DNA of 64,000 nt from Obrimoposthia wandeli. Taxonomy: Eukaryota. Of the stretch, positions 18,360 to 46,377 are shown piece after piece. Location: assembly GCA_977020255.1 (NCBI GenBank), contig CDROCS010002422.1:62001-126000 (forward strand), read 5' to 3'. How positions within the stretch are numbered: position 1 is the stretch's first letter; each line of letters begins with the position of its first letter. The notes under the pieces are model-generated. The model was not told the DNA's origin and did no database searches. It was given only the letters and a program-made list of their open reading frames with translations. A program made the position numbers and the translations under genes.

Positions 18360-20190
18360 ATTGACTAAAAGTAGCTGACAACAGTTCAACATTAGTCTCA
18401 GGAGATAAAGCAACCCGTACAATGTAGTCTTTATCGTGCTCTTTGGTCGTTCCCTGGGTGGATGTTGCCGGTATCGTCCAATAACTGCCTTTAAGCTGTC
18501 CGTAACTAACACAGTGTTTACACTCTGTTGGGTGCACCTCTATCATATGCTCTATCAGCTGACTATTGAGCATTTTGCTAAAAGCTTGTCGCTCCTCGCC
18601 CGTTTCACCTATGGTCGGTAGATCCAAAGAGAACACTGAAGGTGTAAACCCTAACTCAGCTAAATCATCAGAGACAAAGTTGATTTTTGCAACCGGTAAT
18701 ACCTGTTGAATATGCTGAACAAATTGACGGGTTTTAAGATAGGCCGCATGGATGCGCTCTGGCATTGAAGGCATCGTTTCAGCTAACGTAATCAACTGGT
18801 GCTCCAAGGCACTGTTATCAGACAGCACAAGATGCTTGGCAATGATCGTTAACAGCGCACTCGCTTTATCGTTAGTCGCACAGTATCCGGCGATACACAA
18901 TCCACCACTCGGAAATTTCGAGCCACTGGAGAAAGAAACTGTTTTCACACCCGCCAGCTCACTCATCTGATCAAGCAACCTTACATTCGGGCAGAATGTT
19001 TGATCAACCATAAAGGTCGGCTCAATCGCCAAACTACCCTGTGGGGTCATACGTTTAGCGCTTAGCACTGCACCTAGATCATCTAGATTTGGCACTTCAA
19101 CCCGCGGGTTAGTCGGTATTTCGGCCAGTACTATCGGTACACCGTCGATTTTAGCAACGCCAGTAAGTGCCGTGTCTAAGCTGGCAACTAAATCTTGGCC
19201 ACCATCCACTAATAGATCAACAATACTCGCAGCCGGTATCAGAGCTGCCACACGTCGAGCCTGATCATTAGTGCCACCATAACAGTTAGGCGGTAATATT
19301 ATGTTAATCGGTTTGCCTGCATGCTCGACTAGCGCATCTTCAACTAACCCCATTAAAATGGCATATTGAACAGACAACCCACTGGTTGCTATTAGCGGCG
19401 TTGATGAACTGCCAGTATTGGCTTTGATACAGTCATAAAGACTATCTAGCTGCTGTTGTGAACAGCTGGTAACAGCGATGACTTCTTCGCCAACTATTTC
19501 CCGTAACAACTGCAACGCATTCACAGGGGTTATTGCTATTGATTCACGTCTTCTTACATGCTGCACATCACTAATTAAAGCTTCAATATCAGTATTATGC
19601 ACAAACATTGTGCTGCCGTAGTGTGGATGAATATTCACAGTCGCATCAATGTGAGCACTAGTGCTTAAGCAGGTTTTATAAGACGACTGTGTAACGAAGA
19701 TCACCGTACCATCACTGTGCGAAGGCACCTCAAGTACGCTGTTGACCTTGTGTAATTGAGCTTTATAACCATAGATGTTTTCAAGTCTTGGCAAGTCAAT
19801 TAATGGAGAGTTCTGCGTATCGTAATAAACATAGGTTTTACGATCCAATAAGCAGTTTTTACGCAACACAGCGAGGACAGGCATAGTGTTTGATGCAAAT
19901 GAAATAACTTGTTCCGCATCCAGTTTATTTATTTGTGCTAAGAGCCACTCTAATACACAGGACAATTGATGACCTAGGCGAATATAATCATAAGCCGTAG
20001 GCAGGTTTTCTAATGCTTGAGCTGAAAGTTTACCACTATCTTGTAGAGCGATTAACTGCGATAGAAACTGTGATTTAGCTTGTTTTTCATCATAGATATC
20101 TAAACGGTGAGTGGTTAAATTGATCCAGCTACTAGGCAGGTTTTCAAGGATTTTCCTTGTTGTTTGTAAGCATTGTTCTATTGAATTCAA
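18334..20190 (-). CDS. Cys/Met-metabolism-type PLP-dependent enzyme with long N-terminal extension
   Basis: CYGGT, EIPTNP, VDQTF, SGSKFPSGG motifs of the cystathionine gamma-synthase/beta-lyase fold; 618 aa. Confidence 0.75.
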   Translation of the reverse strand: MNSIEQCLQTTRKILENLPSSWINLTTHRLDIYDEKQAKSQFLSQLIALQDSGKLSAQALENLPTAYDYIRLGHQLSCVLEWLLAQINKLDAEQVISFASNTMPVLAVLRKNCLLDRKTYVYYDTQNSPLIDLPRLENIYGYKAQLHKVNSVLEVPSHSDGTVIFVTQSSYKTCLSTSAHIDATVNIHPHYGSTMFVHNTDIEALISDVQHVRRRESIAITPVNALQLLREIVGEEVIAVTSCSQQQLDSLYDCIKANTGSSSTPLIATSGLSVQYAILMGLVEDALVEHAGKPINIILPPNCYGGTNDQARRVAALIPAASIVDLLVDGGQDLVASLDTALTGVAKIDGVPIVLAEIPTNPRVEVPNLDDLGAVLSAKRMTPQGSLAIEPTFMVDQTFCPNVRLLDQMSELAGVKTVSFSSGSKFPSGGLCIAGYCATNDKASALLTIIAKHLVLSDNSALEHQLITLAETMPSMPERIHAAYLKTRQFVQHIQQVLPVAKINFVSDDLAELGFTPSVFSLDLPTIGETGEERQAFSKMLNSQLIEHMIEVHPTECKHCVSYGQLKGSYWTIPATSTQGTTKEHDKDYIVRVALSPETNVELLSATFSQFCADKKLI

Positions 20191-20558
20191 AATAATTTTC
20201 CCTTAAAAGCATTACATAAAGGCCTCTGCAAACCTATCACACAAAATTGAAGCAAGACAAAAAGCGGCCAAACAACGCACTTGTTGTTGGTATAACAGGT
20301 GTGATGAATATGTTGAGCCGATTTCTAACGCTGTATTATCGAGTGCTGTAGTATGCTGAGAACTCACATAAAAACATTCTTTTTACCTACCTCAAAACTA
20401 GGCAGGTTTAATGAGGGCTACCATAGTAATTTTCAGATAACAAAGCAAGCTAAAGGGATTGGTGGCTGCGTAGCTAGCTCATGTTTAATCAACATGTCTA
20501 CCTGCAATATAGCTAATTACCCAGATGATTTACTGGATAATCGATTTAGCTTAGGAAC

Positions 20559-21077
20559 ATAAACAGGCTGCCCCGGATTTTGCTATGTTTTTACGATCAT
20601 AGAGAGGTATTTTGAAGGAGTAGTGCGGCTTCGTAACTTAGTTAGTGCCCATCCAGAAACGGATGTCTACTGCGAACGCCTCACTAACTCAATCTACTCA
20701 CTACTAGAGCTAGATAATTGGAATAACCAAACGCCCATATCTAGTAGTACGTATCTTAAATCATTGGGACGCTCTCGCGACGACCCCGTTTCAGGATGAG
20801 CACTAGTTAGGGTTTGAATTTTGTTTAGGATAAAAAGACTTAAAATCCATCGATTGTAATAGCAAAAGAAAGGTCCAGCCACCCCTATCCAATTGCTGTT
20901 TTGTCTCGATTATTTCCCTGTATAAATTTAAATAAATGCTAAAACAGCAGCACTCAGGAATAGCCCAAGAGTTAACGACACCAGCAAAGCAGTTATCGCT
21001 CAAGAATGATTAACGGACAGAGATTACTATTAACTAATAAATCACTAACAATCAAACTATTTAGACCCCATTGATTT
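20559..21077. repeat. Long direct repeat copy 1 (with a 133 bp extra segment at 20672-20804)
   Basis: Near-identical to 23060-23445 apart from the extra segment; includes the last codons of the MocR gene. Confidence 0.95.
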
Positions 21078-22478: not shown

Positions 22479-22527
22479 TGTTTCTCCCATACCTATAAAT
22501 AAAACACTACAGATTTAATTATTAATG

Positions 22528-22561
22528 GCAGTACAGAAGGCCACAACCCAATCTGTACTGC
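22528..22561. promoter_or_regulatory. Inverted repeat operator candidate for MocR
   Basis: Perfect GCAGTACAGA-N14-TCTGTACTGC, with extra TACAGAT/ATCTGTA half-sites nearby, between divergent genes. Confidence 0.65.
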
Positions 22562-22644
22562 TAATAATAATAGTTTTCTACATCTGTAATAGTACCAAAT
22601 AAATAACTAAAATAAAGCCTAATAAATGATACGGAGATAATACA

Positions 22645-22890
22645 ATGAAGGATTTAGTTATTTTTATTTGTGGTACATTACAAAACTTTATCTTTAACTA
22701 TACTAGCCGTAAAAAATTGCTAACGTTAAATGGTAGAGCCTTGCAGGATATAGGATTGAGCTATGAAGAGGCTATTGCGGAAGGTCAAAAACCCTTTTGG
22801 AAAGGCAATGCCTACCGATCTATTCCATCAGAAAAGGATATCCATGAAAACAACCAGAACAATAAACTCCATTCAAAGCTAATCACATGA
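22645..22890 (+). CDS. DUF1127 (YjiS-like) small protein
   Basis: RKKLLTLNGRALQDIGLS...E..KPFW; the divergent MocR-DUF1127 arrangement parallels E. coli yjiR/yjiS. Confidence 0.85.
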   Translation: MKDLVIFICGTLQNFIFNYTSRKKLLTLNGRALQDIGLSYEEAIAEGQKPFWKGNAYRSIPSEKDIHENNQNNKLHSKLIT

Positions 22891-23059
22891 ATTTAAACTT
22901 TAAAAATTGTATGTCAATTCCATACTTTTTTGAACTATCGATATGAGGTATTCGGGAGCTATAGAGTGGGCATTCCAACAGCGTTTTTAAATTTGTGTAA
23001 CTAAAAACTGTATTTTATCAATGTACCGCATTGAATTAAATAGAGATAATGAAATGAGT

Positions 23060-23445
23060 ATAAACATGCTGCCCCGGATTTTGCTATGTTTTAACGATCA
23101 TAGAGAGGTATTTTGAAGGGGTAGTGCGGCTTCGTAACTTAGTTAGTGCCCATCCAGAAACGGACGCCTACTAGTTAGGGTTTGAATTTTGTTTAGGATA
23201 AAAAGACTTAAAATCCATCGATTGTAATAGCAAAAGAAAGGTCTAGCCACCCCTATCCAATTGCTGTTTTGTCTCGATTATTCCCCTGTATAAATTTAAA
23301 TAAATGCTAAAACAGCAGCACTCAGGAATAGCCCAAGAGTTAACGACGCCAGCAAAACAGTTATCGCTCAAGAATGATTAACGGACAGAGAGTACTATTA
23401 GCTAATAAATCACTAACAATCAAACTATTCTGATCCCATTGATTT
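23060..23445. repeat. Long direct repeat copy 2
   Basis: Matches 20559-21077 minus the 133 bp segment. Confidence 0.95.
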
Positions 23446-23802
23446 CAAGTTGACAGAAGCGCTTCGTATAACGGCTATCTTTATAGACGAAATCACAAAA
23501 CTCTATTCGCCTTTTATTCATCCATACTTGGACTAATTCGATTTGTATCGAGCAAGGCAAACCACATATAGGTAAATCTTATACTGAGCGACGGACATAT
23601 TTATTAGTAGTGCCGATGGCACCTATCAATGGGTCTATTGCTTTAAAACGTTTATCACGATGACAGTGAACAATGACATTATTTAACGCTTCGTTATGCT
23701 CTATTTGATTGACGCATAGGCCTTTTAAAGCCAAAATAATGGCTATGTTTGACAGGTTTGTGAAAATTCGTTTGCTGTATTAGAAATACAGCACTGTGAG
23801 CC
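23446..23802 (-). mobile_element. ISL3-family left end plus truncated, degenerate transposase 5' fragment
   Basis: Minus strand begins GGCTCACAGTG (ISL3-like end); encodes LKGLCVNQIEH...RDKRFKAIDP...KYVRRSV*DLPICGLPCSIQIEL...SRYTKRFCQL. Confidence 0.65.
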
Positions 23803-24064
23803 TTGTATTATGAACTTTTGGGTAATCTTTTTTATATTCCAAAAATACAGCCCCAAGCTTTTGTAATATATTGTTTCTATTAGCTTATTATCAGTGTGTA
23901 AATATTTTCAACAATTCATTCAAACAACAGCCAAAATATTCGCTGGGATACTGATAGTCATAGATTTGTTGTTTATAAAGTTGCGGGAAGTCTTATATTT
24001 CGACAGCTTATATGATCATGAGCTATCCTTTCTCACTCATCTATCCGTAGAAGGGCCTATATTT

Positions 24065-33189: not shown

Positions 33190-33738
33190 GGCTTTTCATC
33201 AACTTTCCATTCTTCATCAATACGTTGTTTTATTGAGGTGCAATTCGATGTTGCTGGCGTTCCAGCCATCTTGGCCCAGACCGGATTTAATTCTACATAG
33301 CTCGTACAAGTTAAAAGTGCTTGCTCATCCAATAAGGCTTGGCTTTTAAAGCGCTCCTCCCACTAACTTTGATGGCTAAAGTTGAACAGTATTGCTGGCC
33401 CGAAGGGTGAGTGCCATGGATGGCAGCGAATATAAGCGGACTTTGCAATTATCTTCAATATTGGCTTTTCTGGCTATAAACTCATTCAGGCAACGCATGT
33501 ACCAACTAATGTCTGCTAAGCGTTTACGCCATTCATCTACAACCTGGCCTATTAAGCCATGGTGCTCTTTAGATAATTTTTCACCTTTGAAGTAGCGCTG
33601 AATTACATCTGGACCATTGTAAAGCTTGCGCCAACGCTCAATCACTTCTAGGTCGGTCAGTGCGTCGAACTCAATTTTATTTAGATAGAGCAAGAGATAA
33701 TAGTTAGACATGATCGCATAGGCACAGATATCAATACA
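33190..33738 (-). pseudogene. REP-associated tyrosine transposase (RAYT), degenerate and interrupted
   Basis: CIDICAYAIMSNYYL (HUH SNHxH motif lost)...WRKRLADISWYMRCLNEFIARKANIEDNC, then after a ~70 bp insert WEERFKSQALLDEQALLTC.SYVELNP. Confidence 0.85.
33363..33433. mobile_element. ~70 bp REP-like palindromic insert inside the RAYT gene
   Basis: Separates the codons for R-F and W-E of the GRFWEGRF motif; contains hairpins aacttt-gatggct-aaagtt and tgcca-tgga-tggca. Confidence 0.7.
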
Positions 33739-33783
33739 GGCGATCGCTATTTACGAAAGCAATTGATTCACGGTGCCAGAACA
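33739..33783 (+). mobile_element. Possible IS110 transposase micro-fragment
   Basis: Encodes GDRYLRKQLIHGART, resembling the IS110 RG[DN]xYLRxxLIHGAR motif, exactly where RAYT homology stops. Confidence 0.45.
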
Positions 33784-33833
33784 CATATATCATTTGAGCC
33801 TCCCGGCAGAACCAGGAGTTTACCTTTTGTAAA

Positions 33834-35084
33834 TTAATGCACGATTTTCTGAGCTAGGTTTTTATAGCTAACACTCGTCTTATCATCATTAATACAAATA
33901 CTTAGCAGGTCAGCAATGAAATAACTTAATGCTCTTTGCTCAATTCTTTTTACTTTACTTTGTTGCTCCATATTGAGCATGTGATATCTTGAAGCAGCAC
34001 CAAAATCACCAAAAATCAAATTAGCGTCTTCATCAATGAGCGTGTTGTGTGCATATAAATCACCATGGCAAACTTTGTGCTCGTGTAGGTGCTCAAATAC
34101 GTTCGTCATTTGGCTGACAATTTTTTGAATTTTTTCAATAGAGAGATAAAACCCTTCGCTAAAATTATCTCGGGTACAGCTTTCAAAACAAGGTGGTAAC
34201 CCGAGGTTTTTATAAGTATTGGGGATGAGGTTCATGACTAACGCAAGAAAATCAGGTTCGTTAACTTGTGCTAGTGACTGGATTAAGTTTGGGTGATTAC
34301 CAACCTTGAGACAAGCCTGTAATTCATCTTCGGGATAACCATCGCTAGTAATATCACCTTTAAATACTTTAACGGCGATTTCGTTAGGAAAACCGGTTGG
34401 TTGATTGTTCCATTGCGCTTTTGAAATGATACCAGAAGCACCTTGCCCAAGTACCTCACCAATATTGAGATCAGTAGAGCAAAGATTAGGTACCGTTTGA
34501 TCTTCAGTTGATGATTGGCTAAATGGGTTTCCAGCAAAGGCGAGCCACGCCAACTTTGGTAAACTTAATAGCTGATCCGGGCATTGTTTTAAATTATTAG
34601 CAGATATACGGACTAATTCAAGATTGTGTAATTGATTTAAATTTTCGGGCAGTGAAGCCAACTGATTACCAGCCAACGCCAGTTTTTGTAGTAGTTTGCG
34701 CTCACCTAAAGTGTCAGGCAGTACTTCAATTTGATTACCAGTTAATATCAACCAACGTAATTTTAATGGCAGAGAATCTGCTGGTACATAGTTAATCTGA
34801 TTTGATTTAAAGCCAATCATCTGTAAATTTGGGCATGCCCCAAGTGCTTCTGGCAAAGTCGTAAATTGATTATTTGAAGCAAATAGAATTTTTAACTTTT
34901 TAAGTTGTGCTATCTCTTTAGGTAAACTTGATAATTGGTTGTGCGATAAATCTAAAATTTCTAGACTGTCTGCTAAAGAAAGTATTTCAATCGGAAATTG
35001 GCTCAAATTATCGCTCAGGGCTAAGTGTTTAGTACCTAATAGTTTGCCACTACGTAGCTCAATAAGTGTGTGCAAAAATAACAT
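33834..35084 (-). CDS. Leucine-rich-repeat protein kinase
   Basis: N-terminal LRRs (LEILDLSHNQLSSLP etc.), kinase GQGASG, AVK, HGDLYAHN, DFG. Confidence 0.92.
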   Translation of the reverse strand: MLFLHTLIELRSGKLLGTKHLALSDNLSQFPIEILSLADSLEILDLSHNQLSSLPKEIAQLKKLKILFASNNQFTTLPEALGACPNLQMIGFKSNQINYVPADSLPLKLRWLILTGNQIEVLPDTLGERKLLQKLALAGNQLASLPENLNQLHNLELVRISANNLKQCPDQLLSLPKLAWLAFAGNPFSQSSTEDQTVPNLCSTDLNIGEVLGQGASGIISKAQWNNQPTGFPNEIAVKVFKGDITSDGYPEDELQACLKVGNHPNLIQSLAQVNEPDFLALVMNLIPNTYKNLGLPPCFESCTRDNFSEGFYLSIEKIQKIVSQMTNVFEHLHEHKVCHGDLYAHNTLIDEDANLIFGDFGAASRYHMLNMEQQSKVKRIEQRALSYFIADLLSICINDDKTSVSYKNLAQKIVH

Positions 35085-39436: not shown

Positions 39437-40639
39437 ATGAGTATTGAGAAAACTCATTTTGATAAAACCTCGGCTGAAAAAAAATCTATAGGTTTCGATT
39501 ATCAATACTATTTCTTTTTGTGGAAAGTACTATCCCTTGAATACGGGCAGTCTGTCGGGCTAGAAGTTAAGGATGATGTTCATACTGAGTTGAATAATAG
39601 CACCCAAATACTCTATCAACTAAAGCATACTATAAGTAAAAAAGCCGACGGGAAGCCTATTAATCTAACGTCTTTAGATAAGGATTTATGGAAAACACTT
39701 TCTAATTGGATACAGGTGATTCAGGACCCTGCGGATGGAAGAAGCTCAAAAAGAGATCAAATAGAATTCATAAATAAAACTAGTTTTGTATTAGCAACCA
39801 ACAAATCATCCTCTAAATCTAATGATTTAGTGAATGCCATTTCAAGTTTTCAAAGTGGATCTAACTCAATAGAAGCTTTTAACGACTCTATAAATACACT
39901 ACTTTTGAACGCGAAAAGCAATACAATTATCGAATACATCACCAGAGTTATAAAAGTTAATAGTGATGTATTGTCTGAATTTATAAATAAAATTTATTTT
40001 GAGCTTGGTGAAGATGAAATAATTAATAAATGTAAAAATGCAATAAAGGCAGACAAGGTTCCAGAAAATAAAATCAACAGTGTATACACTTCATTAGACT
40101 CGATCATAAGAGAAGATAATTTCATAAATATTAAAAAAGGAAAAAAGATTCAAATTTCCTTTGATGACTTTTATAAAAGATATCGTAAGTACTACGATAT
40201 AGCGAGAAGCTGTACTTTATCAATTAACTCGTTTATTGGCCGTTTACCATCCAAAATGGAAGATCAAACATTCATAAGACAGCTACTAGAAATTCAGGAT
40301 GTTGATATCGCACATTTTGAGGATATTGCTGAGTTTACTACCCAAAGGTTAAAGCTTGTAAATAATATTGAAACTTGGCGTTCAGAAGGGTTACTTACCA
40401 CCGAAGAGATTGAACAGTTCCACGTAAACGCTATTCTTTGGTGGAAAAACGAACACAGGAGACAAATGAGAACTCCTGATGGAGGTAGCGCTCTCCAAGT
40501 GTTAGATTCTGCGAGGGTAAAAGAATTAACTATTTCAGGAGTTAGCTTGGGTTTGGAACTATCGAATGGATCGTTTTATGAACTTTCAAATATTCCACGT
40601 ATTGGCTGGAGAAAAGATTGGGTGAAGTATAAATCATGA
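39437..40639 (+). CDS. lmuA: Lamassu/ABC-3C effector: Cap4-like nuclease plus C-terminal domain
   Basis: SIGFDYQY...VGLEVKDDVH...ILYQLKH nuclease motifs; C-terminal FYELSN..RIGW.KDW; coupled to the next two genes by 4-nt overlaps. Confidence 0.75.
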   Translation: MSIEKTHFDKTSAEKKSIGFDYQYYFFLWKVLSLEYGQSVGLEVKDDVHTELNNSTQILYQLKHTISKKADGKPINLTSLDKDLWKTLSNWIQVIQDPADGRSSKRDQIEFINKTSFVLATNKSSSKSNDLVNAISSFQSGSNSIEAFNDSINTLLLNAKSNTIIEYITRVIKVNSDVLSEFINKIYFELGEDEIINKCKNAIKADKVPENKINSVYTSLDSIIREDNFINIKKGKKIQISFDDFYKRYRKYYDIARSCTLSINSFIGRLPSKMEDQTFIRQLLEIQDVDIAHFEDIAEFTTQRLKLVNNIETWRSEGLLTTEEIEQFHVNAILWWKNEHRRQMRTPDGGSALQVLDSARVKELTISGVSLGLELSNGSFYELSNIPRIGWRKDWVKYKS

Positions 40640-41079
40640 GTTTGAGTATTTATAATAATTTTGGGACAGGTGCTTTAGCAATAGTTGCTGTGTTAAACGA
40701 GTGTAAATCATTACCTATTGCTAAAGTGACTTTGATTTTTCCAATCATATCTCATTCTGACCTTCTAAATTACTTAAGCCATTCATCAGCAAAAGTTAAG
40801 AGTTTAGATAAATTAATTGTTGAAAAAACTATGTGCTTCTCTAATTTTAATAAGCGCTATTACGATTCTCTATCTAGCACTTTCAATGCCCTACAATATC
40901 TACATGATCTAGGTTACGTGGAGTTTACAGAGAATGAAATCTACTTAATAAAGCCTGTAGAATATTCTCCAACCATGGGTAAGCGCACAAAAAAAATCTT
41001 CTTGGCTTCTAAAAATTTAAGCTCGATTCTAAATGATCTGGTTGAGAAGCTATACCTAAATTTAAGGATTGAGTTGTGA
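40636..41079 (+). CDS. lmuC: ABC-3C middle component
   Basis: 147 aa gene between effector and ATPase (IYNNFGTG..AI...KSLPIAK..LIFPII). Confidence 0.75.
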   Translation: MSLSIYNNFGTGALAIVAVLNECKSLPIAKVTLIFPIISHSDLLNYLSHSSAKVKSLDKLIVEKTMCFSNFNKRYYDSLSSTFNALQYLHDLGYVEFTENEIYLIKPVEYSPTMGKRTKKIFLASKNLSSILNDLVEKLYLNLRIEL

Positions 41080-43029
41080 AGTTTAATATAGAAAAAATTA
41101 TTCTCTGGTTACGGAATGGAAAACGTAGAGAAATAAAATTTCTCCCTAACAAAGTCAATGTAATTACAGGTGATAGTAATACAGGTAAAACTGCTATTTT
41201 AGAAATTATTGATTATTGTTTCTTTGCATCTAAATCGAAAATTTCTGAAAGTATGATCAATGAAAACATTGGCTGGTATGGATTGACATTCAATATTAAT
41301 GATAAAAGATACACTATCGCAAGAAAGAGTTTGGATAACACAAAAGTATCCAACGAGTACTATTTTTCATCTATTGGTGAAAGTCCAGCCCAGCTGGAAG
41401 CAAATAATACAAGCGATGCAATAAAAACATTATTAGAGAATGAGTTTTCTATTGATAGAAAAGTTTCAGTATCTTACGGTAGTAATATTATTAGACCTGG
41501 TTCAAAAATATCTTTAAGGTATTTCTTATTATTTAATACCATATCTGGCAATATTATAGAAAGCGACTCTGGAATATTTTTTGATAAACAAAATGAAGCT
41601 AGATACAGAGATGCCCTACCTAGGATATTTGATTTAGCCGTAGGTATTGAAACTGTAGAAAATATTTTAAAAAAGGAAAAACAGGTAGATCTACAAAAGA
41701 AAATAAACGCCTTACTTAAAGCAAGCAAAATAATTTCAGATAAATCGACTGCGTTTAAATCAGAAAAAGAAAGTTTGATTAAAAAATCAAAAGAATTTTC
41801 TATAATACCAGAAGAACTAGACTTTGACTCCTCTATTAATAGACTTAAGGAAGAAATCAGCAATACCGATAAAAAACCTAACAACATAGGTTCACGAAGT
41901 GAACTAGAAAAAGAGTATTATATTTTAGAAAGAAAAATCAGGAATTTAAAATCATTTTCAAAAGAACATGCTTCTTTTAAGAAAAACCTTATTAACATCG
42001 AAGACAGCCTAAAGCCTATACAATTTTTAAAAGAAAGAGATAGCGAACTTCTAAAAACTTCAGTATTCGAAGATTTGCTGGAGTCCTATGCTAAAGAATT
42101 ACATGAAATAAAAGTAGCCAGAAAAAATAAAACTCCTATAGACAGGCAGGTTACCGATGCTATTGAAGAATATGAGAGTAGATTAAAAACATTACGGACG
42201 ACATTATTAATACTGCCGACCAGAGCCAAGAGCTTCGAAAACGAAAAATCTAAGTATATGTTCTTAGGGGAAGTAAAAGCTAAGCTAAATATTTTTTCTG
42301 ATAATAAAGATTCAATATTAACCAAAACAGATGATAAAATCGAAGTTTTAAGAGAAAATAATACTGAACTTTCTAATTCAGTCGGACTCTATTATGCTGC
42401 ATACAGCCGACTAGCAGCAAGCATCATACTAAGCATGAAGTTAAAAATCAACTAGTGAATTAAACAGCTCTCCCAGAATATAGAAATCATGATATCTAGC
42501 AGCTAAAGCCATCGAGATATCTAGTAAAAACCTGTTTTTGAATAAATAAAACAAACTCTGATGACGAAAGCACAAGTCTCTTGTTGTCTTGGAGATTACG
42601 AAAGCCAAGCAGTAAAAATCATATGGAAGCAGTTACTAATTTATTTCTCTACTGATAAAAATCTTTTTTTAACTCAAGAAGTCAACTAACTGAAGCATCT
42701 TGCAAGAAGTAGCTCTCCTACGTAAATCTACCTTTTAAATGCAAGTAGCTTTGCCATATTTAGTTATTGATCAACCTAGTCGTCCATATTATGGGGAAGA
42801 CCCTACATCAAAAAGAGCTAACATAGATCATAGCGATGAAACTAAAATCACCAAAGCATTCGAATTGTTAAATAATTTCATCCAAACAAGAAGAGATAAC
42901 GACTCTGAATTTCAGATGATTATTTTTGAGCATGTACCTACACGCATATTTGATGGTTTTGATAACATTCATGTCGTTGAAGAATTTCGAGATGGTAATG
43001 CTTTAATTCCCGAATGTTTGTTGAGCTAA
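41076..43029 (+). pseudogene. lmuB: Lamassu SMC-like ABC ATPase (DUF3732), broken by an anomalous segment
   Basis: Walker A ITGDSNTGKT and coiled coil in 41076-42455; Walker B YLVIDQPSRPYY and IIFEH in 42739-43029, in a different frame. Confidence 0.8.
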
Positions 43030-43122
43030 AAATACTTCAAGCTACTTGATCTTATATTACTGATGCCATGACAACACTATTACAGATATTGAACCTTTAA
43101 TCCTACTGAGGCCTTTGTTAAT

Positions 43123-45247
43123 ATGGAGTTTATATTACTTCCTAGTAATTCCGCGATACCAAGCTCAAACACAAGTACTGCTTTTCTAAAAATTGATAAC
43201 TGGAACGATTACTCATTTGTAACCCAGTTTTCATTAAGCGTCCGAGATGAAAAAGGAGTTTTGCATAATATAGGAAAATTGAAGATAGGTTTTAAAGGAC
43301 AGACTATAGAAAAATCGACCCATGGTGAGTTAGAGAGTAACTTCACGACATTATCGGGCAATTTTTTTTCAGCTGGTAATTCAGTAGACTATTACAACAC
43401 TTTGAATTTATTATCTGAAACTCTAAAAAACAACATACTAAACTCGTTACGCGACTTATCATATATACCTTCGTTGATAGAATATGTGAAAGGAGAAACT
43501 GTTTTTAAACATTCTCTTCTAAGAGATATTAGTTTGACAACGTTAAAGGGGAAATACGCAAGAGTAATCGCTAGAATGCCTGAGTTAAGCAATTTTAACT
43601 TTTCTTTTAAGCGCTTAGCATCTGAAGATTTAGCCTCTATTGATCTTGATTTTAAGGTTACTGAAAATTCAAAACCAAGCACTAATATACATGCATTAAT
43701 AGGAAGAAATGGATCAGGTAAAACAACGATTATAAAAAATCTCGGCCGCAAGCGACCGAGTTTGTAGAACAGCCCGAGCTGCTTACTATTTAATTCACTT
43801 TGTTCATGACCAATAGTTATTCGAACATATTTTCGTATTACTTCTTCTGCTAGCATTTCCAATTGTTTCCACGAAATAACTTTTGAGTCCACAGCTTCCT
43901 CCCCAGAAATACTTCTTTATAGCGGGGTGTAATCGAAAAACTCTTGAGCCAAAATACTTTTAAATACTTGCATCACATAAGATGGTGCTATTTTTGGATT
44001 TGTTCGCACTACCATATGAATATGATCAATAGGAATTTCAAGCTCTATAATTTCTATATCATAGTCATATCCAATTTTTTGGATAATCGCTTAAGATCAG
44101 CTCTAATGGCTCAACAAATACTTTATGGCGATACTTTGGAATCCAAACAAAAATGATACATTAATCTGAAAAAACATGGTGTGAATTTCGATACTCATAA
44201 GCTGAATATTCTTACAATGACTTCGTCATTGTACGCTATCCAGCTCGGGGGCAAGCCCCCGAGATTTACGCTATGCGGTTAAACGGAATGATTAAATCCA
44301 TCACCAATAAAACTGATACTTTGGGTCAATTTATTGATAAAGATTCAGATGAAAGCTTACCAATAACTGATGATTATTTCAGTAGATTAGTATCTGTTTC
44401 ATTCAGTGCATTTGATCCTTTTGAGCCTCCAAAAGAACAGTCAGACCCATCGAAAGGAACTTGCTACTTCTATGTAGGTTTAAAGAATATTAATGGTGAT
44501 GATTCCCTAAGAACAATTTCTGAATTAAGATTTGAATTCGTAAAGAATATCATTCACTGCTTTATGAATAAAACTAAAGAAAAGTCATGGCTTTCTGCAA
44601 TTAATAAACTTGGATCAGACGATAATTTTTCATCAATGAATTTAAGCAAGTTGAAAGATGAGTACTATAAATTTAAAGATATAGTTAATGCTACACAACC
44701 AGATGAAGATGGCTTTAGAGATGCTTTTTTACATCATATTGAAGATGAATTATCAAACATGAGCTCTGGGCATGCGATTGTTTTGTTCACCATTACTAAA
44801 CTTGTAGCTACTGTTGAGGAAAAAACTCTTGTACTAATCGATGAGCCTGAGGGTCATTTACATCCTCCTTTGCTTTCTTCATTCATAAGAGCACTCAGTG
44901 AATTACTATATGATCAGAATGGAGTGGCAATTATTGCAACCCACTCACCTGTTGTTATGCAAGAGATACCACAATCTTGTGCTTGGATCATAAATCGTTT
45001 TGGTCATGCTTTAACACCTTACCGACCTAAATTAGAAACTTTTGGCGAAAACGTAGGGATTTTAACTCGTGAGGTTTTCGGTTTAGAAGTTACAAACTCT
45101 GGATACCATGACATATTGCATAAGTCAGTGCAGAGCGGGGGGACTTATCAGGAAATATTAGAGGCCTATGATAACCAGCTAGGATTAGAAGCAAGAGCAA
45201 TACTAAAATCAATGGTGTTATTTCGAGATAGCGAGTTACAAAAATGA
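43123..45247 (+). pseudogene. ptuA: Septu PtuA-like AAA ATPase split by IS200
   Basis: Removing 43732-44278 gives in-frame GRNGSGKTTI|LNGMIK; C-half has LIDEPEGHLHPPLL and ATHSPVV. Confidence 0.85.
43732..44278 (-). mobile_element. tnpA: IS200/IS605-family element (tnpA only, frameshifted), 547 bp
   Basis: Fragments YHFVWIPKYRHK, DHIHMVV (HUH), YFWGGKLWTQSYFV, EEVIRKYV; subterminal hairpins ctcggccgcaagcgaccgag (43741) and ctcgggggcaagcccccgag (44244). Confidence 0.92.
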
Positions 45248-46134
45248 GAATGCTATCTAAACCACCGTATAGTCTAACAGACGTACTTCACAAATGTACT
45301 GAGGGTATGGCTAAAGATAGTACTAAAGCGCCATTCTTAAATGCCTTAAATAACCTTATCGAAAAGGGCGACGAGTACCTTTTATATGGCCAAGATGGCC
45401 AACTCTATAGAATTCCATATTCAGGGAAACCTAACAATACAGAAATCATTGTTAGGCCATTGTCTAAAAAGACACTGATAGGGCTTTATGAGAATTATTT
45501 AAGGAGCAAAAAAAATCCAGCACGGATAATATGGGAAGAACTTATTGCTTCTGCCAAAGAAAGCTGCCCTTTTTGTGGCGATATAGGGCGACCTACAAAC
45601 TTGGACCATTTCTTACCAAAAGCTCATTTTCCTCAGTTTTCTATCTTACCTATAAACCTTATACCATCATGTTCAGACTGCAACTCTGGTGAAAAAGGTA
45701 ATGATTTTACTTTAACAGCACAAGACCAAATTATTCACCCATACCTAGATAAAAGTCATTTCTTTGAAGAGCAATGGGTAACTGCTAAATATATAAATGA
45801 AGATGAAGGGGCTATTGTGTACTCTGTAAACCCGCCTGCAGATTGGAACATAGATGACAAAGCCAGAGTTGAAGAGCATTTTAAATCTTTAAATTTAGCC
45901 AAAAGATATAGTATTGAAGCAGCGAGTCACTTGAGCGAAATAATAAGCCTAAGAAACGCTTCTTACTCTAGCACAAGAAAGCTAATTCCAAATATAGAAG
46001 AGTCATCTTTAATTACTCACTTTTTAGATACAACTATTACTCCTATATCGACTGGACCATTATTTGCTAACCATTGGAAAAAAACAATGTACGCTACCTT
46101 AGCTAACACTGAAGAGTTTCTAAAACCTAGATAG
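45244..46134 (+). CDS. ptuB: HNH endonuclease (Septu PtuB-like)
   Basis: CPFCG...LDHFLPK..FP.FSILP.NLIPSCSDCN, IIHPYLD; overlaps the ATPase stop. Confidence 0.85.
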   Translation: MRMLSKPPYSLTDVLHKCTEGMAKDSTKAPFLNALNNLIEKGDEYLLYGQDGQLYRIPYSGKPNNTEIIVRPLSKKTLIGLYENYLRSKKNPARIIWEELIASAKESCPFCGDIGRPTNLDHFLPKAHFPQFSILPINLIPSCSDCNSGEKGNDFTLTAQDQIIHPYLDKSHFFEEQWVTAKYINEDEGAIVYSVNPPADWNIDDKARVEEHFKSLNLAKRYSIEAASHLSEIISLRNASYSSTRKLIPNIEESSLITHFLDTTITPISTGPLFANHWKKTMYATLANTEEFLKPR

Positions 46135-46377
46135 AGTTATTAGCAGTTGCATTTAAATACAGGCTCCCTAACTATTCTTTATAATTGCTAGAAACACAGT
46201 AATACAACCTCTATTGGAAAATCAAATTCCTAAAAAACACCAAAAACCGCTACAACCCATACCCGACTATGCCTAGAAGATTCCAAACTTTTCTGAACTC
46301 AGTTCAAGTACAGTTTGGAAATTACACTCACAAAAAATCAAAAAACACCTCAAAACTCTTTACCTTAAAAGAAAAAC

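Follow-up and report, generated by a model that had tools for sequence, protein, structure and literature searches.

A noisy but collinear block inside the lmuB gene of a Lamassu locus is most likely an assembly or consensus artefact

About 400 nt inside lmuB, the ATPase gene of a bacterial anti-phage locus of the Lamassu type, are, as far as alignment can tell, a heavily corrupted version of the very lmuB coding sequence that is missing there, with its order preserved. In all likelihood this block is a local artefact of assembly or consensus building and not the product of a new mutational process. The broken lmuB frame most likely reflects a faulty record and not the organism, in which the gene is probably intact. 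The window, that is, the whole stretch of DNA that was analysed, comprises 64,000 nt of gene-dense bacterial DNA that contains no N (C2422:62001-126000). It belongs to an assembly (G000) of 1.35 Gb in 6912 contigs, which is made up of a host plus many bacterial genomes; a profile of the P-II (glnB-type) family finds 40 matches in it, spread over a large number of contigs of which some reach several Mb. On another contig (C122:280075-280373, minus strand) a glnB-type gene is recovered in two overlapping pieces of the P-II profile, 1-57 and 49-102, and looks as if its frame were broken around the T-loop.

The locus is a Lamassu system, and all three of its components, LmuA, LmuC and LmuB, are supported by Pfam and PADLOC profiles (Table 1). 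The three genes abut or overlap one another. The features expected of LmuB are found by PADLOC and Pfam, namely an SMC/Rad50-like ABC ATPase and a DUF3732 C-terminal region; the 3' part of the gene corresponds to the C-terminal end of DUF3732, beginning at the Walker B region YLVIDQP. An uninterrupted lmuB frame, which is likewise expected of Lamassu, is absent from the sequence as written, where the frame closes at 42455 and reopens elsewhere in another frame.

Table 1. Components of the Lamassu locus and the corrupted block, in window coordinates.
Feature	Coordinates	Strand	Status and support
lmuA, Lamassu effector component	39437..40639	+	open, apparently intact; PADLOC LmuA PDLC03848, E 5e-45, profile 5-366/373
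lmuC, middle component (MC3 of ABC-3C systems)	40636..41079	+	open; Pfam PF20131 MC3, E 6e-9; PADLOC LmuC, E 6e-9
lmuB 5' part, clean coding, aa 1-425	41076..42350	+	75% identity to P0001; PADLOC LmuB PDLC03859, 1-432/611
Corrupted block, lmuB codons ~426-521	42351..42749	+	collinear alignments; X2 contigs; closed in all frames
lmuB 3' part, clean, in another frame, to the stop	42750..43029	+	Pfam PF12532, 101-186/186, E 1.5e-19; PADLOC LmuB 539-605/611

The closest intact LmuB relatives are 611-616 aa long, and the 5' part of the window's lmuB follows one of them, P0001, without a single gap until the homology is lost at nt 42350; HMMER carries it slightly further, to aa 434 at nt 42371. Within aa 330-425 exact words such as RKNKTPID are common to the window's lmuB and P0001-P0003. 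The open reading frame 41076-42455 continues beyond the end of homology as nonsense and finishes at a false stop codon (42453-42455). Homology is back at 42739/42745 and continues in a different frame as far as the stop at 43029. The initial annotation had already described a frame that drifts and stops at 42455, with homology regained near 42750 in another frame at an offset of 1663 nt, and both observations stand. Its estimate that the gap is about the size of the missing segment has to be corrected. The missing part of P0001 (aa 426-521) amounts to 96 residues, or 288 nt, and the intervening DNA spans 394-399 nt where 288-293 nt are expected, so that there is a surplus of about 106 nt and the block is roughly 37% too long; the larger figure, 399 nt, is measured to the point where a read contig starts to fit (42750). 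The same read contig sets the right edge at 42749/42750, and the left edge is fuzzy (42351-42395). GC content (33.8% in the block against 29.5% and 34.0% in the flanks) is uninformative.

The relation between the block and the missing codons was assessed with two profiles. The first is position-specific, describes the 96 missing residues on the basis of relatives, and was aligned to the DNA at the codon level with cheap frame changes. It yields a single collinear path, which places aa 432 at 42397 and aa 521 at 42734-42736 and has a score of 85.9 against 50.3 ± 7.0 for dinucleotide shuffles (maximum 77, n = 200), 45.9 ± 7.6 for other pieces of the window, 44.9 for the reverse complement and 42.9 for the plain reversal. 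The second, an independent formulation, is a nucleotide profile back-translated from the 12 closest proteins with the codon usage of the locus itself and compared by ordinary gapped local alignment. Back-translation was used because DNA scans gave only distant or partial relatives; metagenome and genome contigs returned relatives at 50-57% only, plus one partial locus at 73% that covers query aa 1-197 only. The nucleotide profile scores 93.8 against 59.9 ± 5.3 for shuffles, 52.9 ± 7.4 for other window pieces and 70.5 ± 6.2 for the order control, in which the 24-nt blocks of the profile are permuted. The observed alignments beat order-permuted profiles at z 3.4-4.7, with one order-permuted control nearly equal to the observed score (85.1 against 85.9, and 93.6 against 93.8), and these statistics hinge on cheap indel penalties, the signal being gone when frameshifts are penalised stiffly. 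The 3' end of the block (42701-42736) taken alone matches aa 510-521 with a score of 23.8 against 13.9 ± 2.1, and the best three HSPs of a tblastn search are collinear in three frames, placing 42303 at aa 410, 42587 at aa 479 and 42700 at aa 510.

These alignments bear directly on the motif words from which the block had been regarded as scrambled. The words KPVFE, KSL, LRKP, NHM, GSS and QEVA are indeed present where the initial annotation placed them, distributed over three frames, and are genuine words of the closest relatives. What does not survive is the claim that their order is permuted, with NHM before GSS. The path from aa 432 to aa 521 is collinear, and PSSKNHM at 42605-42625 stands in the proper place for the GSSSNHM of the relatives, so the GSS at 42625, which lies in another frame, is a chance word. 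The initial annotation had itself named collinear alignment to intact lmuB with simple indels among the outcomes that would speak against shuffling; a collinear alignment is what we find, with indels that are many and not simple. Inversion, plain reversal or complementation of the segment was considered separately and rejected, since six-frame translations and translations of the reversed and complemented sequence are blank and the reverse complement scores at the null level.

To calibrate the extent of the damage, undamaged 288-nt pieces of lmuB were given synthetic noise and scored by the same procedure, a clean piece reaching about 215. The observed score of the block is equivalent to a substitution rate of roughly 10-15%, with insertions at 18-25% and deletions at 5-7%. 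Damage per base inside the block is by this calibration about 35-45%, compared with no difference at all over more than 3 kb of flanking sequence, and it exceeds that of a typical raw long read. In a lenient nucleotide alignment, the 3' part of which is unreliable, insertions form about 30 runs and deletions 13. No part of LmuB is better conserved than the missing one (mean pairwise identity 0.74, rising to 0.83 for aa 471-521), and the weak match of the block is therefore not due to low conservation. Short direct repeats are mildly enriched locally, with nine pairs of 7-mers no more than 80 nt apart (mean, 3.5), which places the block in the top 3% of window pieces. This is suggestive but not decisive evidence that stutter has duplicated one or two short stretches; GATGACGAAAGC and GATTACGAAAGC, which lie 34 nt apart, are an example.

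The locus was also compared with contigs assembled from accurate reads. The public run X2 (2025) was consulted as Logan contigs and not as raw reads, a form in which presence is shown and absence is not. It contains 61% of the words sampled from 41500-43600 and is probably the source sample, although it may represent a different individual from the one assembled. When aligned to 40600-46200, its contigs are 100% identical to the window over 40600-41618, 41602-42122 and 42750-43069, and further downstream over 44254-44950, 45323-45684 and 45799-46200; among those listed for this interval there is no contig joint across the block. One contig, record 11 (855 letters, depth 6.1), reaches the right edge. 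Only its letters 536-855 fit, from nt 42750 onward, and the first 535 fit the window nowhere at 80% likeness or more. Apart from record 11 the depth is about 0 over 42470-42749 (0.59 in the bin 42470-42656), and the value of 3.07 in 42657-42843 is exactly the share that record 11 contributes from 42750; with a depth of about 6, X2 has other coverage holes as well, such as 43405-43591. The artefact branch of the initial annotation gains from these contigs, which agree perfectly with the flanks on either side but do not match the block, and one of which carries other letters up to nt 42749. By depth arithmetic the bins would fit a record 11 that starts near 42098 and also covers about 42098-42350. 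Between the two clean parts it would then hold some 282 letters against the 399 of the window, near the 288-293 of an intact gene.

A second run, X1, from a marine sediment metagenome, contains short contigs 90-97% identical to parts of lmuB within 40768-42968. None of the pieces listed lies between 41954 and 42804, a span that includes the corrupted block. At this level of identity, close relatives of the bacterium or of its Lamassu island would be free-living in sediment.

A plausible course of events can be put together from these observations. The true sequence would be the ordinary, well-conserved middle of lmuB, codons 426 to 521 or thereabouts, with GSSSNHM and MQE among its motifs. What was deposited would be a very noisy version of it, in which small insertions are many, deletions fewer, substitutions also occur, and stutter has probably duplicated one or two short stretches. 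The cause of the corruption would be technical, and the likely route is a stretch with poor long-read support or one where the consensus or a join was mis-aligned. Short reads would have polished the flanks to perfection and left the block unrepaired, as polishing fails where accurate reads no longer map. An in-silico alteration made at a later stage would look the same as a failure of the consensus.

The likeliest of the alternatives is a real degenerate allele, in which lmuB was inactivated by a local burst of indels and substitutions, for example through error-prone break repair or conversion from a decayed copy, and X2 stands for a sister population with an intact gene. Such an allele would be derived from lmuB, as the collinearity of the block demands; inactivation is common among defence genes, a repeat truly interrupts the Septu-like ATPase gene next to lmuB, and contig data are unable to prove absence. 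We nevertheless consider it unlikely, given that it calls for more than 40 indel events and some 10-15% substitutions in 400 nt and none in over 3 kb of X2-identical flanks, and that record 11 shows other sequence abutting 42750 in an otherwise identical strain. A donor is also wanting, as neither a second intact lmuB nor any donor copy is present in the assembly. To our knowledge, no neutral or repair process gives dense indels and substitutions confined to about 400 nt. That a clonal marine bacterium has had an lmuB segment of about 290 nt rewritten with its order kept, by localised indel hypermutation or sloppy templated repair, appears very unlikely, and nothing in the data calls for template switching acting on a defence gene.

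Shuffling at the level of k-mers, whereby the original 290 nt would have been broken up into short words and put back in another order, either in silico or through micro-rearrangement, does account for recognisable words in three frames, for one GSS that follows NHM, and for the modest excess of short local direct repeats. It is hardly credible in view of the single collinear path, which beats order-permuted profiles, and of the GSSSNHM motif retained in order; moreover, the block is 106 nt longer than the segment it replaces and is therefore no permutation of it. Least credible of all is a foreign insertion accompanied by a deletion, in which a small mobile element, an intron or unrelated DNA would have replaced the middle of lmuB. 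The sharp boundaries and the closure of every frame would suit such an event, but the block is itself homologous to the lmuB codons that it should have displaced. A mobile element of the IS, MITE or intron kind was rejected on account of the unique copy, the lack of end repeats and the lack of an Rfam family: the block matches only itself in the 1.35 Gb assembly, its terminal inverted and direct repeats do not rise above chance (inverted repeats of at most 15 nt at 80%), and no Rfam family is found in it at E<=1. The initial annotation had noted the absence of IS ends, a target duplication and an ORF, which agrees with these results as far as convincing terminal repeats, an Rfam match, a second copy and open frames are concerned.

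Immediately downstream lies a gene that serves as a control for what a real interruption looks like. A PDC-M01A/PtuA-like (Septu-like) ATPase gene at 43123-45247 is split by a multi-copy repeat of about 540 nt (43740-44283), and its halves meet cleanly, the PADLOC profile being covered from 1 to 207 in 43123-43767 and from 203 to 507 in 44273-45247; the intact partner gene PDC-M01B follows at 45244-46134. For the repeat, the assembly yields 23 matches at 68-93% identity, on C2422, C84, C2735, C3914 and other contigs, and pieces of it also occur in the marine sediment metagenome X1. In X2 its contig depth is 100-267 against about 6 on the flanks, and diverged copies are present. The repeat is thus seen in X2 as a genuine high-copy sequence, and real insertions are therefore visible by contig comparison.

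Two other places in the window deserve mention in their own right. On the minus strand at 33376-35084, an ORF with LRR and protein-kinase domains (33834-35084), in which the kinase domain is cut at about position 150 of 263 in the profile, is followed by a separate ORF of 111 aa (33376-33711) with no Pfam match; this is possibly another interrupted gene. An element of about 300 nt is present in two copies, 20694-21003 and 23143-23371, which carry near-identical small minus-strand ORFs (MSDNCFAGVVNSWAIPECC...) and each sit in an unusually long gap with few ORFs, 20190-21057 and 22490-23894 respectively.

In biological terms the case is of little weight, since this Lamassu system is an ordinary one and its ATPase gene probably undamaged in the organism. 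Its interest lies in the fact that sharply bounded corrupted sequence in a mixed assembly of host and bacteria imitates pseudogenes, "scrambled" motifs and novel rearrangements, and conclusions on gene decay or loss of defence drawn from this assembly should first be checked against reads.

Compared with known systems, the locus resembles the Lamassu systems of the ABC-3C type (LmuA-LmuC-LmuB) that have a DUF3732 SMC-like ATPase, with which it shares the gene order, the overlapping starts and stops and the profile matches of three components. It differs from its Lamassu relatives in that lmuB is unreadable from about codon 426 to about codon 521, the most conserved part. The interrupted PtuA-like gene next to it is likewise a defence ATPase gene in which about 0.5 kb of internal sequence is non-coding; however, that stretch is a clean multi-copy insertion, whereas the block in lmuB has no second copy, takes the place of coding sequence and is not seen in the X2 contigs. 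A further likeness is to residual consensus errors that break genes in long-read or hybrid assemblies, described for small genomes in the Kastor paper (PMC12007338). Frameshifts and premature stops in genes with intact relatives, apparent disagreement with accurate-read contigs and clean neighbours are common to such errors and to the lmuB block. Consensus errors are usually isolated single-base indels, often in homopolymers, while the lmuB block consists of about 400 nt of dense errors and is some 37% too long. Errors that fill the whole block, together with its surplus length, therefore suggest a stretch that escaped polishing entirely, or else a faulty join, instead of residual errors of the scattered kind.
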